Sequence record: OR529409.1
DNA length: 64,000 bases
Direction: 5' to 3' (one strand)
Part shown: positions 2,159 to 6,644 of the stretch, one piece after another
Layout: every line of letters begins with the position of its first letter
Numbering within the stretch: the stretch's first letter is position 1
Program-made: the position numbers and the translations under genes
Notes under the pieces: generated by a model
What the model saw: the letters and a program-made list of their open reading frames with translations, nothing else
Databases searched by the model: none
What the model was told of the DNA's origin: nothing

Positions 2159-2662
2159 AATCAACTCCCACACTGAGTTTCGGGACTGGAGGAATTTCCG
2201 TCTCGATAAAAATTCAACTGAGAATTTTTACTCTGGGGTTTCGGCGGTTATAATATTTCACTGCGGGAATTTAAAAACTCAACGGGTTTACGATCCCGTA
2301 TGTTTTTGAGTTTTATTTCCCGTATAAAATACTCCGTGCCGTAAGACAACACCCCACAGAAAAAACCTCGCCTCCGGAAAAAATTCCTCGAAGGCGAGTT
2401 GCCATGATCTCACTCGAGCAAGAATCAATCCGACATACAATCCCAAGCGCTCCGAAATTTTTTTCTTCGGAATTTTGGTCATTGGTAAATTTTTACATAC
2501 AAATCTATTTTATATTTGTATTTTTCGCTTGCGCGGATATTCTAATTTTTCAAAGATAATCTAAAACCGATTCCGGTTCTGGGTTTTTTATTTTTCTGTG
2601 TTTTGATTTTCCAAATCCAATTTTCAAAAATCTAAATCTAAAAATCTAAAAAATTTAATACT

Positions 2663-2920
2663 CAAAAATCGATTTTTGCTAGGGGTCCTTATTACGCGTG
2701 CGTACGCCCGCACGCATATAAAAAATAAATATAATACGTAGTATTATATTTTCCTTTGGTTTTATATTTTTAATTTATTAAAAATATATTAATATAAATT
2801 ATTATAAATATTTTTTATTAGTTTGTTTTTATAAAAAATATATAAATATATATTTATATATATTTATATTCATTAGGCGCGCGCCAGCGTGCGTGTGTGT
2901 ACGTGCGCGCACGCGTAATA
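2663..2920. other. AT-rich element bounded by inverted repeats and alternating purine-pyrimidine tracts; candidate replication origin or other cis-acting site
   Basis: 2716-2875 has 10 G/C in 160 nt. 13-bp inverted repeat at 2690-2702/2908-2920. Palindrome CAAAAATCGATTTTTG at 2663-2678. Hairpin at 2727-2751. 31-nt RY tract at 2887-2917. Confidence 0.45.
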
Positions 2921-3262
2921 GAGAAGGGGTTATAAAAATACAAGATTGGCCCTGAGAGATTATCCAGAAAAAATCACACAGAGTAAAAATATTAACCGGA
3001 ATGATTTTGAGAAGATTTAATACTCAACCTAGGAATTCGTATCAGTCGGATGAAAAAACGTTTTAGAAATCGATACAGGAATTTTTAGAGGGTGTTCTGA
3101 TCGAGTTCTCAGGAAGGATTATTCACTGAATAAAAATATTTTAATCAAGATAATTAATTTTTACCGCAAGTTAGATTTATCGAGACAAGAAGATTTAACC
3201 GCAAAGTAATATCTTACGGAGAGCATAATCTTCTGAGCAGGACAGAGATCTCGAATTGTCAG

Positions 3263-4057
3263 ATGGCAAATACCCCATCCGTTCGAAAGTTAACCCGAAA
3301 CATCCCTAAGAGGCGATATCCTATGCAACCAGCTAACCCATGGAAAAACAACAAGCACGTTAAATCACAAGACTCAGCAAGTGTTGATCGTTACGAATCC
3401 CTGTTACAAGAATTACCTGATGCGTTGAATGCAACCCCTCGAGATCCCGGATATCTTATAGCGACTAAAAAGATTTTATTAGTCCTGGAAATGTCTGAAG
3501 GAACCCGACTGACCGTTCGCAACGTGATGGAAAACCCAGACATGATTCGTAAGGTCCACGAGTTGTTGGTGGAGTTAGGCTGGAAGCAAGCGATTAGCCG
3601 AGGGACTCAGGTTTTCGTCACTCACCAGGATTTAATTAAACCGAGTATCTACCGCTTAATCGACCTCGACGCTAATGGGATCGGTTACGCTAACGAACTG
3701 CTGAATAATATTTTATTAGACCGTCGGTTCAGTGCTCGGGTAGACAATAACGATATTCGAATCCTCCCAGGAGACCGTAGCGCAAGTAACCCCTTTAGCC
3801 TGCTGTCGTCTAACGTCGTCAGTGGTTGGCGTAAAGCCATACGGGATTACGACAAAAGCGTGACGGGTAATCTTATTGGACACATGACGGTTGTCGGCGA
3901 AGACAATACGAATATCCCGCTTGATTTAAAACTGGTTTTCGCTCTGCTGGATTACATTGGGTGGCCAGAAATGTATTTTACTGGCGAACAGATTTTATTG
4001 AGTAACCCCATTGGGGATTATCAAACCCTTGAAGTGAATTTCATCGACCCTGAGTAA
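3263..4057 (+). CDS. Hypothetical protein with a basic N-terminal tail
   Basis: 264-aa ORF, first gene of the rightward arm. No family recognised. Confidence 0.7.
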   Translation: MANTPSVRKLTRNIPKRRYPMQPANPWKNNKHVKSQDSASVDRYESLLQELPDALNATPRDPGYLIATKKILLVLEMSEGTRLTVRNVMENPDMIRKVHELLVELGWKQAISRGTQVFVTHQDLIKPSIYRLIDLDANGIGYANELLNNILLDRRFSARVDNNDIRILPGDRSASNPFSLLSSNVVSGWRKAIRDYDKSVTGNLIGHMTVVGEDNTNIPLDLKLVFALLDYIGWPEMYFTGEQILLSNPIGDYQTLEVNFIDPE

Positions 4058-4315
4058 TTCCTAACGACAGAGTGATGTTATTAGTAAAGATCTTTGGACT
4101 CCCTGTTGATTAACTAGCGACCCAACCTCATCTCTTTGAACCTCCTTACCACGAGCGAGATAGCCAAAGTAGCTAGAGATTTTCAGGGGGTTCAATCCCC
4201 ATTATTCGTTAATCTTATTAGACCCATTGTCCTTAGCCATGTAGCGACGGCCATTCTCCTGTGACAGACAAGTTTTTTGTTCAATGGGATAGATTAACGT
4301 TTTTCTTCACGTCGT

Positions 4316-4382
4316 GTTATCTGATGAGTCTTCGACGCTAAACAAGACGAAACCTAATGAATCTATTTTATTAGGTCATAAT
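4316..4382 (+). ncRNA. Type I hammerhead ribozyme
   Basis: Core CUGAUGA (4321-4327); stem II GUCUU/AAGAC; GAAA (4349-4352); stem III CCUAAU/AUUAGG; GUC cleavage triplet ending at C4377; stem I GUUAU/AUAAU. Confidence 0.85.
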
Positions 4383-5047
4383 TCAACCTAAGCGTTGAAC
4401 GGGCAGTTAGGGGCAATGGTCCCCGAGGTCTTCAGCTTCTTCGCCTGCCCGCACTAAAAAGTTCTTTCATGATTAGGAGTGCCGCACTCTACGAGCGGAC
4501 AATAAGCAACCGAAAGTGGGAGAGAAAGAAGCGTGTCTGGTCGCTTGCCGGAAAGTTGGTTCAGGCCGGTTTCTTCCCAACCCAAACGACGCTGCCCAAG
4601 ATAGGGCTGCAAGTCGTATTAGCGAATTATACCGGTATGCGGGGTTTCCGCGATAAACCGGGTTAGCTACGGGTAAGAAACCGGCCGGAGTAATCAGCCT
4701 TTCGTATTCGGGTAACGTGAGTTATTGTAGAGATATCTCTGAGGGTTAGGCCAACCCCCGACGTTCTCCGAGTCCGAAGGGAAGCTTGCTCAGCTTCGTA
4801 GGAACTCCAAAATCTCAGACGGTCACACCTCGCAATCTTACGGCAGTATGATTGCCTATTCGTCCTTTGTCGCTCACCAAGGGGCGAGTAGGAAACCTCT
4901 GCCACGGCGTTTCGTTTGCCTTTTACCATTGCTTTTGTTATAACCTCTCTGTTTGAGTTGAGTGTTAACTTCCCCAAGAGTATAACCTGTTATCTCTCTC
5001 TTCGTGAGAAGTCGGAGATAATGGGGTAAATTCTTAGGAGGTTCGTT
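4378..5047 (+). ncRNA. Putative large structured RNA (unclassified) starting at the hammerhead cleavage site
   Basis: No credible ORF. Dense helices, including 12-bp 4564-4575/4675-4686 enclosing a multi-way junction, 4400-4406/4445-4451 and long-range 4409-4420/4925-4936. Strand is inferred from the ribozyme and flanking genes. Confidence 0.55.
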
Positions 5048-5236
5048 ATGTACACATACCAGTATACCGTGCGATACCGAATACCTAATTCTGTGTTTAC
5101 GACTTACAGCGGAGAAATTACTTCCGACTGTTTGCTCACTAACGCTAATCGCATCTTTGACGTTTTGCGCACTGAGGTTCATAAAGCTACTAACGTTAAC
5201 TCGTTTAGCATTACGAACTTTAAGCTGAAAGAATAA
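5048..5236 (+). CDS. Small hypothetical protein (62 aa)
   Basis: Strong SD AGGAGG at 5036-5041 ahead of ATG 5048. Followed by a terminator at 5405-5436. Confidence 0.7.
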   Translation: MYTYQYTVRYRIPNSVFTTYSGEITSDCLLTNANRIFDVLRTEVHKATNVNSFSITNFKLKE

Positions 5237-5404
5237 GTCGAGCTACGCGCTCAACCTACCTTAGGGCCGGAAGTAGTTACGACTTAGGGGGAAAGAAGAG
5301 TCGTGCCTTTAAGTACCCCAACCCAATTCGTGTGGTGATCTCTCACATCATCTCATGAATATCGCCACATCATCATTAAAGTTCTACCATGAATTTTTAT
5401 TCCT

Positions 5405-5436
5405 TCCAGTAGGGTTCGGCCCTACTGGACTTTTTT
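5405..5436 (+). terminator. Rho-independent terminator
   Basis: 10-bp stem TCCAGTAGGG/CCCTACTGGA followed by T6. Confidence 0.85.
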
Positions 5437-5567
5437 CGCGTTTTTTAAATCGGCAGTTGTTTAATTATGTCAGAACTAGATTTTTTCAGTTCTAAATTAT
5501 GGTAATGTAAAGCAAAAGATAATGCTTTCCATTCCAACTATCATAATTTCTTTTAGGAGCTAGATCA

Positions 5568-6530
5568 ATGAGTACATTACGTGTTTACGCGTGCGGCGGT
5601 ACTGGTATTAATATCGCGTCTAAATGGATTGCCACCGGTGCGAATACGCTTATTCGTAAAGCCCAGTTCATCGGACTGGATAGCAGTGAAAACAACAAAC
5701 CGTATAATGACGCCTTTAAGGTCGAACGTCCTGAAGGAACTCGTGGCGGCGGTAAGGAACGTAAGCTGATCGGTAAAATTGCCGCCGGGTTTATTGACAG
5801 TATTTTGACCAAACATAAACCGGGCGATTTCAACCTGATCATCATGAACGCGGCAGGCGCTACCGGGAGTACGTTCGGCCCGACTCTGATCAATCGTCTC
5901 CTCTCCCAGGGGGTCCCTGTCATCGCCCTGGTCGTAGGCGACCTGACCTCGGAACTGGAAAACTACAACACAGTTAAAACGTTTGAAAGCCTGGACAACC
6001 AGCGCATCAATCTGAACGTACCGGTTATCATCGACTACGTGGACAACGCCAAATATCCCAGCCGCGGATTGGCCGACAAATACGCCATCGGCCGTCTTGA
6101 TATCCTGAGCCTGTTCTTAACCGACGAACATGAAGAAAGTGATTTCCAAGACATCCGGAACCTGTTCTATTACAACCAGGTTACCAAGGCGGCACCTACT
6201 CTTGCTCGTATCGACTTCTTGACCGATACTCAGTTAGACAACGTTACTCCAGGCCTGGTTGCTGAATTTGGTTTGTATCGTAAAGCGGACGACATCGGCA
6301 GCCATATTAAAAATCTGGCATACCGTTCGACCGGCGTTATTCAGGAAGGTAGCACTAACTTCCCGGCTGGAATAGAACATCTCCACATGGTCTTTGATCA
6401 TGATGCGACGATCAAAGATATCCTGGTTCTGGTTCAGGATCTTAAAGATATCGAGATCCAAAATAACGAACGTTTTAAATCTGCCCAGCAGGTTGGAAAC
6501 GGCGGTGATGATTCCGGAATGTCCTACTAA
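5568..6530 (+). CDS. phuZ: Phage tubulin PhuZ
   Basis: Tubulin/FtsZ motifs ACGGTGINI, GGGK and AAGATGSTFG. 320 aa with an acidic C-terminal tail. Position typical of phiKZ-like phages. Confidence 0.92.
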   Translation: MSTLRVYACGGTGINIASKWIATGANTLIRKAQFIGLDSSENNKPYNDAFKVERPEGTRGGGKERKLIGKIAAGFIDSILTKHKPGDFNLIIMNAAGATGSTFGPTLINRLLSQGVPVIALVVGDLTSELENYNTVKTFESLDNQRINLNVPVIIDYVDNAKYPSRGLADKYAIGRLDILSLFLTDEHEESDFQDIRNLFYYNQVTKAAPTLARIDFLTDTQLDNVTPGLVAEFGLYRKADDIGSHIKNLAYRSTGVIQEGSTNFPAGIEHLHMVFDHDATIKDILVLVQDLKDIEIQNNERFKSAQQVGNGGDDSGMSY

Positions 6531-6539
6531 GTAAAACAA

Positions 6540-6584
6540 TACTGCTACAGCCCTTCTATGGGGCTGTAGCAGTAGTTCTTTATT
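6540..6584 (+). terminator. Rho-independent terminator
   Basis: 14-bp stem TACTGCTACAGCCC/GGGCTGTAGCAGTA just after phuZ, with a T-rich tail. Confidence 0.8.
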
Positions 6585-6644
6585 TTTTGCATCTATCTAT
6601 AGGTCTAATTAAAAAGTCGCTTATAAACCTTTACAGGAAGCTTT

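Follow-up and report, generated by a model that had tools for sequence, protein, structure and literature searches.

The designs closest to the locus described here are of four kinds. RiboJ-type insulators consist of a synthetic hammerhead ribozyme followed by a hairpin before the ribosome-binding site (RBS), while the T4 gene 32 leader and the leaders of ribosomal-protein genes are long leaders of autoregulation or translational control. Large RNAs such as GOLLD, ROOL, OLE, raiA, and HEARO form a third kind. Natural hammerheads of phages, the fourth, often flank single genes, which implies a role in mRNA processing, and a stem I/II pseudoknot that is required for fast cleavage is present in about 40% of hammerheads (PMC3088659). 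Here we analyze a locus within a 64,000-nucleotide (nt) stretch of sequence record OR529409.1 (the window), whose relatives belong to Miamivirus, a genus of nucleus-forming jumbo phages. Positions ~4094 to 5437 are read, at a probability of roughly 45%, as one conserved module: an mRNA that is processed by a hammerhead and has a very long structured leader acting in cis, followed by a small open reading frame (ORF) of 62 amino acids (aa). A preliminary description of the window, made from the letters alone, had instead proposed a discrete, densely structured RNA of about 670 nt (4378-5047) released by the ribozyme. Literature searches returned no ribozyme or large structured RNA in nucleus-forming jumbo phages (chimalliviruses), and the element appears to be undescribed.

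When compared with GOLLD, ROOL, OLE, raiA, and HEARO, the RNA of the window is alike in its size of several hundred nt, its multi-helix junctions, and its encoding by a phage; it differs in being fused to an ORF, in having a length that is not conserved, and in being known from three closely related lineages only. With the RiboJ insulators it shares the same logic, in that self-cleavage strips the upstream context and the resulting 5′-OH RNA opens with a hairpin; however, the window system is a natural one, with a structured stretch of about 650 nt between this hairpin and the RBS. The gene 32 and ribosomal-protein leaders have the same end, one that occludes the Shine-Dalgarno (SD) sequence, and conservation beyond that expected of a spacer is a further likeness, whereas the leader of the window is 5-10 times longer and the protein of its ORF is not consistently basic, the homologue in the metagenomic lineage L008 being acidic. 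The type I pseudoknotted phage hammerheads and the window ribozyme have in common (i) the three-stem junction with its CUGAUGA...GAAA core and GUC triplet; (ii) the pseudoknot between the 5′ flank and loop II; and (iii) a site between phage transcription units, implying mRNA processing (PMC3088659). The window ribozyme is set apart by scoring below the Rfam cut-off (23.7 versus 48.5 bits, type III model) and by preceding an unusually long structured RNA.

RESULTS

Sequences compared

The locus was compared with its relatives in the Miami group and with the metagenomic lineages L007/L011 and L008. Identity was 100% with a database record labelled Stenotrophomonas phage BUCTxx100, 99.4-99.6% with Klebsiella phages Miami, YC1, and phiKp_32, and ~95% with KPN8 and Raoultella phage VB_ZK_P1. 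The host label of BUCTxx100 looks questionable, as the near-identical phages belong to a Klebsiella/Raoultella group. L007 and L011 are from the same sample, and L011 and L008 represent the two metagenomic lineages that yielded the hammerhead element; the three lineages referred to below are thus the Miami group, L007/L011, and L008. PhuZ of the window is 74% identical to that of L007 and 49% identical to that of L008. In the records of the relatives the stretch is either unannotated or annotated with short antisense "hypothetical proteins," and the gap between the stop codon of a 264-aa ORF (4057) and the ATG of the 62-aa ORF (5048) is without a credible gene. Features are on the + strand unless stated otherwise.

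A predicted type I hammerhead ribozyme

A type I hammerhead ribozyme was predicted at 4310-4382 based on sub-threshold Rfam alignments, core invariance, and covarying stems. Stem I (4316-4320/4378-4382) is followed by the core CUGAUGA (4321-4327), stem II (4328-4332/4344-4348), the GAAA (4349-4352), stem III (4352-4360/4368-4376), and the cleavage triplet GUC (4375-4377), with the predicted cut at C4377|A4378; this agrees with the 5′ end at 4378 that had been proposed earlier. A pseudoknot is formed by CGUCG (4310-4314) with CGACG in loop II (4333-4337). No hammerhead was matched in Rfam gathering mode. Below that level, Hammerhead_3 aligned to 4306-4358 (23.7 bits, E = 0.039; gathering score 48.5), and in a permissive Rfam scan the RAGATH-1 hammerhead model aligned to 4315-4382 in the type I register.

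The hammerhead core was found to be invariant in five sequences of the three lineages (the window, KPN8, L010, L011, and L008), except at N7, a position free to vary, where L010 and L016 have C. Stem II was also invariant across the compared sequences, while the other pairings had changed. Stem I in L008 reads UCA/UGA in place of UUA/UAA (U-A to C-G), with a further change of G·U to G-C. Stem III in L011 has one A-U replaced by G·U and, distally, G·U/A-U replaced by A-U/G-C, with pairing kept. The pseudoknot of L008 is ACGUCU with AGACGU and carries a compensatory change of G-C to U-A. Given a core that is preserved in three lineages, covariation in stems I and III and in the pseudoknot, and a precedent in phage hammerheads (PMC3088659), the upstream type I hammerhead is accepted here on comparative sequence grounds as real despite failing the Rfam gathering cut-off, and it would define the 5′ end of the downstream RNA as the preliminary description had it. 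A second ribozyme that would allow circularization was not found in the Rfam scan of 3900-5700 at E ≤ 10.

Non-coding status and conservation of the region downstream of the cut

Between 4378 and ~4932 there is no conserved ORF. Those ORFs that do lie within 4378-5047 are short and mostly antisense, have no Pfam match, and have no related counterpart in L007 or L008, and a hand count of substitutions within them revealed no clear codon-position bias. GC content was 0.52-0.55 at 4400-4800 compared with 0.375-0.44 upstream and 0.41-0.42 downstream. Variable positions were counted over the window, Miami, KPN8, and VB_ZK_P1, with the same pattern apparent by eye in L009, L010, L012, and L016. Per 100 nt, 2-5 positions were variable in 4300-4899, compared with 20 in the linker bin 4900-4999, 13 in the small ORF, and 17-19 in the adjacent spacers. 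Fewer positions vary in 4300-4899 than in the small ORF, and the non-coding stretch is therefore under the stronger constraint. Thus, the lack of a credible ORF and the GC content above that of the flanks, both read from the window before, are borne out by the comparison, and the RNA downstream of the cut is non-coding and under purifying selection, with fewer substitutions than the adjacent ORF and spacers.

Folding of the leader

The + strand of 4379-5047 was found to fold with a minimum free energy (MFE) of −248.7 kcal/mol and a z-score of −5.97 versus shuffles, compared with a z-score of −2.69 for the − strand; 4379-4920 gave −3.88, and coding controls gave +0.6 and +1.3. The consensus structure of the Miami group has 201 pairs, with an overall pairing of 99.8%. 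A compensatory change on both sides is seen at 4636/4657 (U-A to C-G), and a further 13 pair types occur, versus 2-7 when partners were slid as a control. These pair changes fit the consensus fold without proving it, since divergence within the Miami group is only ~3%. A substitution test on the MFE structure of the window itself gave a marginal result (pairing kept at 14 of 24 substitutions in paired sites versus 11.2 expected, P = 0.05), with the failures clustered in long-range helices refuted below and in the variable loop 4478-4486.

The RNA is predicted to open at 4378 with a 5′-OH end and a hairpin, P1, within 4378-4399 (4382-4387/4394-4399). The hairpin of the window recurs unchanged in L011, and folding of L008 predicts one there as well, built from an altogether different sequence (ACGAC...GUCGU). 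It is followed by a hairpin domain at 4400-4451, in which CGGGCAG/CUGCCCG surrounds GGGGC.../...GCUUCU in both the MFE and the consensus fold; as this domain is invariant within the Miami group, covariation provides no evidence on it either way. The consensus fold then forms a closed multi-helix core at 4503-4931, with a closing helix (4503-4524/4897-4931) around a conserved hairpin (4536-4541/4547-4552), a junction domain (4564-4578/4671-4686), a long helix (4699-4718/4761-4780), and hairpins at 4781-4797, 4832-4855, and 4856-4891. Among these elements, the hairpin at 4536-4552 is the sole core block that could be aligned to L008, its pairing being retained through changes, while L007 has counterparts of the hairpins at 4832-4855 and 4856-4891 that carry compensatory changes. 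The block 4762-4797 differs from L007 by one base, although PhuZ is 74% and the small ORF 63% identical. Conservation of this block beyond that of the ORF and PhuZ suggests a sequence-specific role that goes beyond gating one small gene. The core gives way to a U-rich linker (4916-4956) that was hypervariable in the alignments, with a 9-nt indel at 4920-4928, and that is a candidate for a single-stranded hinge or a processing site.

In L008, the segment from the cleavage site to the ORF is only ~350 nt, yet its z-score is −5.9. It is largely without the core and shares with the window only the hairpin block 4536-4552. Across the lineages the leader ranges from ~350 to ~670 nt in length, and its two ends are kept, the hammerhead with P1 on one side and the SD hairpin on the other.

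The dense structure asserted in the preliminary description is consistent with these folds, and its helices at 4400-06/4445-51, 4564-75/4675-86, and 4989-5021 as well as its junction helices are part of the consensus. Other details needed correction. The first hairpin is present but had been placed one base off on its 5′ side (4383-4388/4394-4399), and the 12-bp helix 4564-75/4675-86, described as perfect, is so in this isolate but has a G·G mismatch (4567 = G) in all other relatives. A long-range helix proposed between 4409-20 and 4925-36 is refuted: bases 4920-4928 are deleted in KPN8, VB_ZK_P1, L009, L010, L012, and L016, and the helix is not used in the consensus fold. Structure had also been drawn through 4916-4956, which is the hypervariable linker.

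The Shine-Dalgarno hairpin, the 62-aa ORF, and the 3′ end

Ahead of the start codon, an extended hairpin (4976-5003/5008-5035) is followed by UAAUGGG, and at its base 4967-4972 pairs with the SD sequence (5037-5042); the whole element, 4967-5042, has a fold z-score of −4.6. Equivalent SD-proximal hairpins with covarying stems, again followed by UAAUGG(G/A) and the SD sequence, were identified in L007 and L008. The SD sequence of L008 sits in a separate small hairpin, and KPN8 keeps the SD pairing despite a 1-nt deletion.

The 62-aa ORF (5048-5236) has homologues that adjoin the RNA in all lineages (63% and 34% identity) and was present with the ribozyme and the RNA in every lineage found. The order of RNA, ORF, and terminator is the same in L007, L008, L009, L010, and L016. 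On the basis of its conservation and its structural model, the ORF is a real gene. An AlphaFold2 model of the protein (predicted local distance difference test score, pLDDT, 93) has a beta-beta-alpha-beta fold, for which the best folds in the PDB were those of archaeal/eukaryotic ribosomal protein LX/eL20, a weak similarity (template modeling, TM, score 0.6-0.7; E 0.03-1). Many uncharacterized small phage proteins share this fold, and no Pfam or PHROG match was obtained. That the protein binds RNA is not claimed, given that the resemblance to LX/eL20 is weak and the L008 homologue is acidic by residue count.

No terminator-like site was detected on the + strand from 4378 to the start codon at 5048, and a weak terminator candidate at 5110-5126 is inside the ORF. 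Starting from the stop codon, the 3′ untranslated region (3′UTR) is predicted in the window and in L007 to form a hairpin (5234-5286) with an apical GCCUUAGGRCCG (5259-5269). This motif is found in all three lineages (L007, 430-530; L008, 1130-1215), although the outer stem of L008 (UUGUCGG...CCGACAA) was recognized by eye and not by prediction. A second hairpin, G-rich/C-rich, follows the first one within 5234-5400. The intrinsic terminator is located at 5405-5437, where an 11-bp stem is followed by CTTTTTT; it is conserved in relatives and has equivalents in L007 and L008. Position 5047, at which the RNA had been taken to end, is merely the base before the ATG, and the strong terminator lies well beyond it. 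The proposal of a discrete RNA of ~670 nt is not supported: the RNA is contiguous with the 62-aa ORF, the unit ends ~390 nt further on, and the corresponding RNA of L008 is ~350 nt.

An upstream hairpin with a 16S-3′-end-like loop

By fold and conservation, a long imperfect hairpin was identified at 4094-4195, upstream of the hammerhead, with an apical loop (4139-4151) that displays AACCUCCUUACCA. This 13-nt motif, AACCUCCUUACCA(C), is kept in the window, L011, and L008 amid otherwise diverged sequence and is carried by an apical loop whose stem differs from lineage to lineage (L011, ~1461-1563; L008, ~429-520). In the window it is unique at 0 mismatches. Eleven of its nt, ACCUCCUUACC, match the 3′ end of Escherichia coli rrsB 16S rRNA together with the 2 spacer nt that follow it. 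Furthermore, GAACCUCCU (4138-4146) of the window is exactly complementary to AGGAGGUUC at the SD sequence of the small ORF (5037-5045), while in L011/L007 and L008 only generic SD/anti-SD pairing is left. Read on the opposite strand AACCUCCUUACCA resembles a strong RBS, and no ORF consistently follows it. The fold z-score was −2.0 for 4058-4377 of the window and −5.35 for the region 5′ of the hammerhead in L008.

Within the same region, the GGGGGUUCAAUCCCC hairpin (4186-4200) is T-arm-like and also has a weak terminator score, its T-run being stronger in L010 and L016. It was rejected as part of a tRNA: ARAGORN detected none, and neither L011 nor L008 has the hairpin. A candidate promoter motif, TKTTATTAGTR, at 4076 occurs in 14 copies versus 5 expected and was dropped because most of the copies are inside ORFs. 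No late-type TATG motif was found 5′ of the hammerhead in the window.

Database comparisons and distribution

When scanned at the gathering threshold, the whole window matched no Rfam family, and 3900-5700, scanned at E ≤ 10, gave only sub-threshold hammerheads and chance matches. GOLLD, ROOL, OLE, raiA, and HEARO were matched neither at gathering in the window nor at E ≤ 10 in 3900-5700; in the latter scan raiA-hairpin aligned in part, at 17 bits, but without the hairpin of that family. Group I/II introns, RNase P RNA, transfer-messenger RNA (tmRNA), and tRNA were likewise without a match at the locus by Rfam models or ARAGORN. This is in keeping with the earlier statement that the RNA matches none of ROOL, GOLLD, OLE, introns, RNase P, and tmRNA. 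A permissive whole-window Rfam scan (E ≤ 0.5) gave a weak tmRNA-like match far from the locus and nothing else. This match (6545-6596, − strand; 15 bits, E = 0.058) overlaps the annotated terminator of phuZ (5568-6530) and is probably due to chance. Neither 4058-4400 nor 4378-5047 showed similarity to E. coli genomes, and the RNA showed no significant complementarity to those genomes or elsewhere in the window; no repeats were found.

Searches of IMG/VR, by PhuZ and by hammerhead pattern, returned no relative, and the JGI metagenomes provided one additional KPN8-like genome only. An index of 5.8 billion proteins queried with PhuZ, gp267, and the small ORF returned only the Miami group and the two metagenomic lineages. 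The known range of the element is one genus and two metagenomic lineages, despite the very large collections searched.

Structured RNAs upstream of phuZ in other phages

Vibrio/Photobacterium phages of the genus Aphroditevirus were observed to carry, directly 5′ of phuZ, a structured RNA of 460-600 nt that appears to be unannotated (L004:5503-5965, L005:5363-5965, L013:861-1465, and L014:863-1465). In these RNAs, 24 compensatory pairs were found in 4 sequences, together with a TATG-type start motif and an own terminator, and without an ORF; TATG is a late-promoter motif (PMC7598289). In Erwinia phage RisingSun, the equivalent region (L006:4675-6000), which is annotated as two small antisense ORFs, has a fold z-score of −5.3. 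These RNAs and that of the window are alike in genomic position, in size (460-660 nt), and in + strand z-scores of −5 to −7. They differ in that the Aphroditevirus and RisingSun RNAs are without a hammerhead and without the 62-aa ORF, and in that the Aphroditevirus RNAs have their own terminator and TATG-type start motif. No homology between the window RNA and the Vibrio, Photobacterium, or Erwinia RNAs was found by blastn or nhmmer, with single sequences or profiles, and the proteins encoded upstream in the window have no detectable homology to those of these phages.

Other features of the window

Two further observations were made away from the locus. The gap at 2440-3260, between divergently oriented genes, has an extremely AT-rich core (2719-2867, GC ~20%) flanked by GC-rich arms of alternating purine/pyrimidine (2696-2718 and 2868-2917), and the GenBank record of phiKp_32 appears to begin within this core; by its sequence, the gap is a candidate for a replication origin or for a genome terminus. 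In addition, the 9-mer TCTTTAACC occurs at 9 sites in the window, mostly on the minus strand (20737, 39178, 44628, 54407, 56918, 58912, and 62207; + strand, 12191 and 36363), and may be a regulatory motif of the phage.

DISCUSSION

The RNA downstream of the hammerhead runs straight into a small conserved gene, which makes a giant regulatory leader more likely than a free-standing RNA. As the L008 version is short and yet equally folded, the conserved unit consists of the hammerhead, P1, a structured region of variable size, the SD hairpin, the ORF, the 3′UTR, and the terminator. Cleavage itself, the ends of the transcript, and the regulatory role are what we infer from this arrangement. The pseudoknot-stabilized hammerhead (4310-4377) would cut the nascent transcript co-transcriptionally at C4377|A4378. 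The 5′ product would keep the ribozyme and the hairpin with the 16S-3′-end-like loop and would end in a 2′,3′-cyclic phosphate. The 3′ product, of ~1.06 kb, would carry a 5′-OH, P1 as a protective hairpin, ~530 nt of compact structure, and the variable linker, then the SD-occluding hairpin, and would continue through the 62-aa ORF and the structured 3′UTR to the terminator. Both types of end, a 5′-OH with a hairpin and a cyclic phosphate, should slow decay by RNase E and 3′ exonucleases, respectively. The structured region may then make the processed mRNA more stable and use the SD-occluding hairpin to gate translation of the small ORF, probably through the binding of some factor.

Four points weigh against a leader that acts in cis: (i) covariation within the Miami group is weak, with a single double change; (ii) blocks of the RNA, such as 4762-4797 when compared with L007, are far more conserved than the ORF that they would regulate; (iii) no ligand, protein partner, or conserved alternative fold that could act as a switch was identified; and (iv) Aphroditevirus phages have a covarying RNA at the same position with its own terminator and no ORF.

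The main alternative, tentative and somewhat unlikely, is that the region encodes a free-standing large non-coding RNA (ncRNA), as put forward in the preliminary description; it would act in trans as a scaffold, a decoy, or a component of a ribonucleoprotein. A second cut in the linker 4916-4956 would free an RNA of ~540 nt, and the small ORF would be a neighbor or a second function. The core is indeed a closed domain (4503-4931) that is followed by an unconstrained linker, but there is no 3′-end signal ahead of the ORF. Conservation of the RNA exceeds that of the flanking proteins, as seen in the single base by which 4762-4797 differs from L007; the RNA of L008, however, is ~350 nt long, largely lacks the core, and shares only the 4536-4552 hairpin. 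The positional analogues of the Vibrio/Photobacterium phages stand alone, with their compensatory pairs, own terminator, and absence of an ORF, and the RisingSun region is also strongly structured, but no homology to the Vibrio-type RNAs is detectable. Finally, the failure of all Rfam families to match would suit a new kind of RNA, while an RNA acting in trans finds no complementary sequence in the rest of the window or in E. coli genomes.

A broader proposal, quite unlikely in our estimate, would make both cleavage products functional: a ribozyme-processed RNA system of nucleus-forming phages, composed of a mimic of the 16S 3′ end and a large folded RNA acting in trans, that targets translation or an RNA-targeting host defence and is functionally related to the Aphroditevirus and RisingSun RNAs. 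If true, such a system would represent a previously unrecognized class of large chimallivirus ncRNAs.

The upstream fragment by itself may be considered as the functional product, a small RNA of ~285 nt with a cyclic-phosphate 3′ end made by the hammerhead. Its loop would pair with strong SD sites, including that of the small ORF, or serve as a decoy for factors of the 16S tail, and the downstream RNA would be an ordinary leader. The 13-nt loop motif, unique in the window and kept in three lineages on covarying stems, is consistent with such a role, as are the 11 nt that are identical to the rrsB 3′ end/spacer junction and a type I geometry in which the body of the hammerhead stays on the 5′ fragment. 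The exact match of GAACCUCCU to AGGAGGUUC at the SD sequence of the small ORF adds to this, but SD/anti-SD complementarity is generic. Similarly, the region 5′ of the hammerhead is strongly structured in L008 (z-score −5.35), whereas 4058-4377 of the window folds modestly (−2.0). The candidate promoter motif for the 5′ end of this fragment failed its test, and the conservation of the 530 nt downstream would go unexplained. Overall, we regard a functional upstream fragment as distinctly improbable.

It is scarcely credible that the region is protein-coding, a decaying pseudogene, or a spacer with an incidental fold signal. Some records do annotate an antisense ORF of 104 aa (4663-4977), the frame of which survives the 9-nt indel, and a hand count puts several substitutions at its third codon positions. 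This ORF, however, starts with TTG, is Arg-rich, has no Pfam match, and is absent in L007, and the antisense ORF of L008 is unrelated. The region is also more conserved than nearby real genes, unlike a decaying spacer, and has an asymmetric fold z-score that favors the + strand.

In nucleus-forming jumbo phages, the phage nucleus houses transcription while translation takes place in the cytoplasm, such that the two are physically separated. The locus brings together a hammerhead predicted to fix the 5′ end, a leader of ~650 nt that is constrained beyond the neighboring proteins, and a hairpin that presents a 16S-tail-like sequence, and it is a compact, testable case for RNA processing, stability, and translational gating in these phages. 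Action in cis alone would make it a phage leader of unusual complexity, and action in trans a new class of large ncRNA. Analogues may exist in other chimalliviruses, where strong covariation is already apparent.

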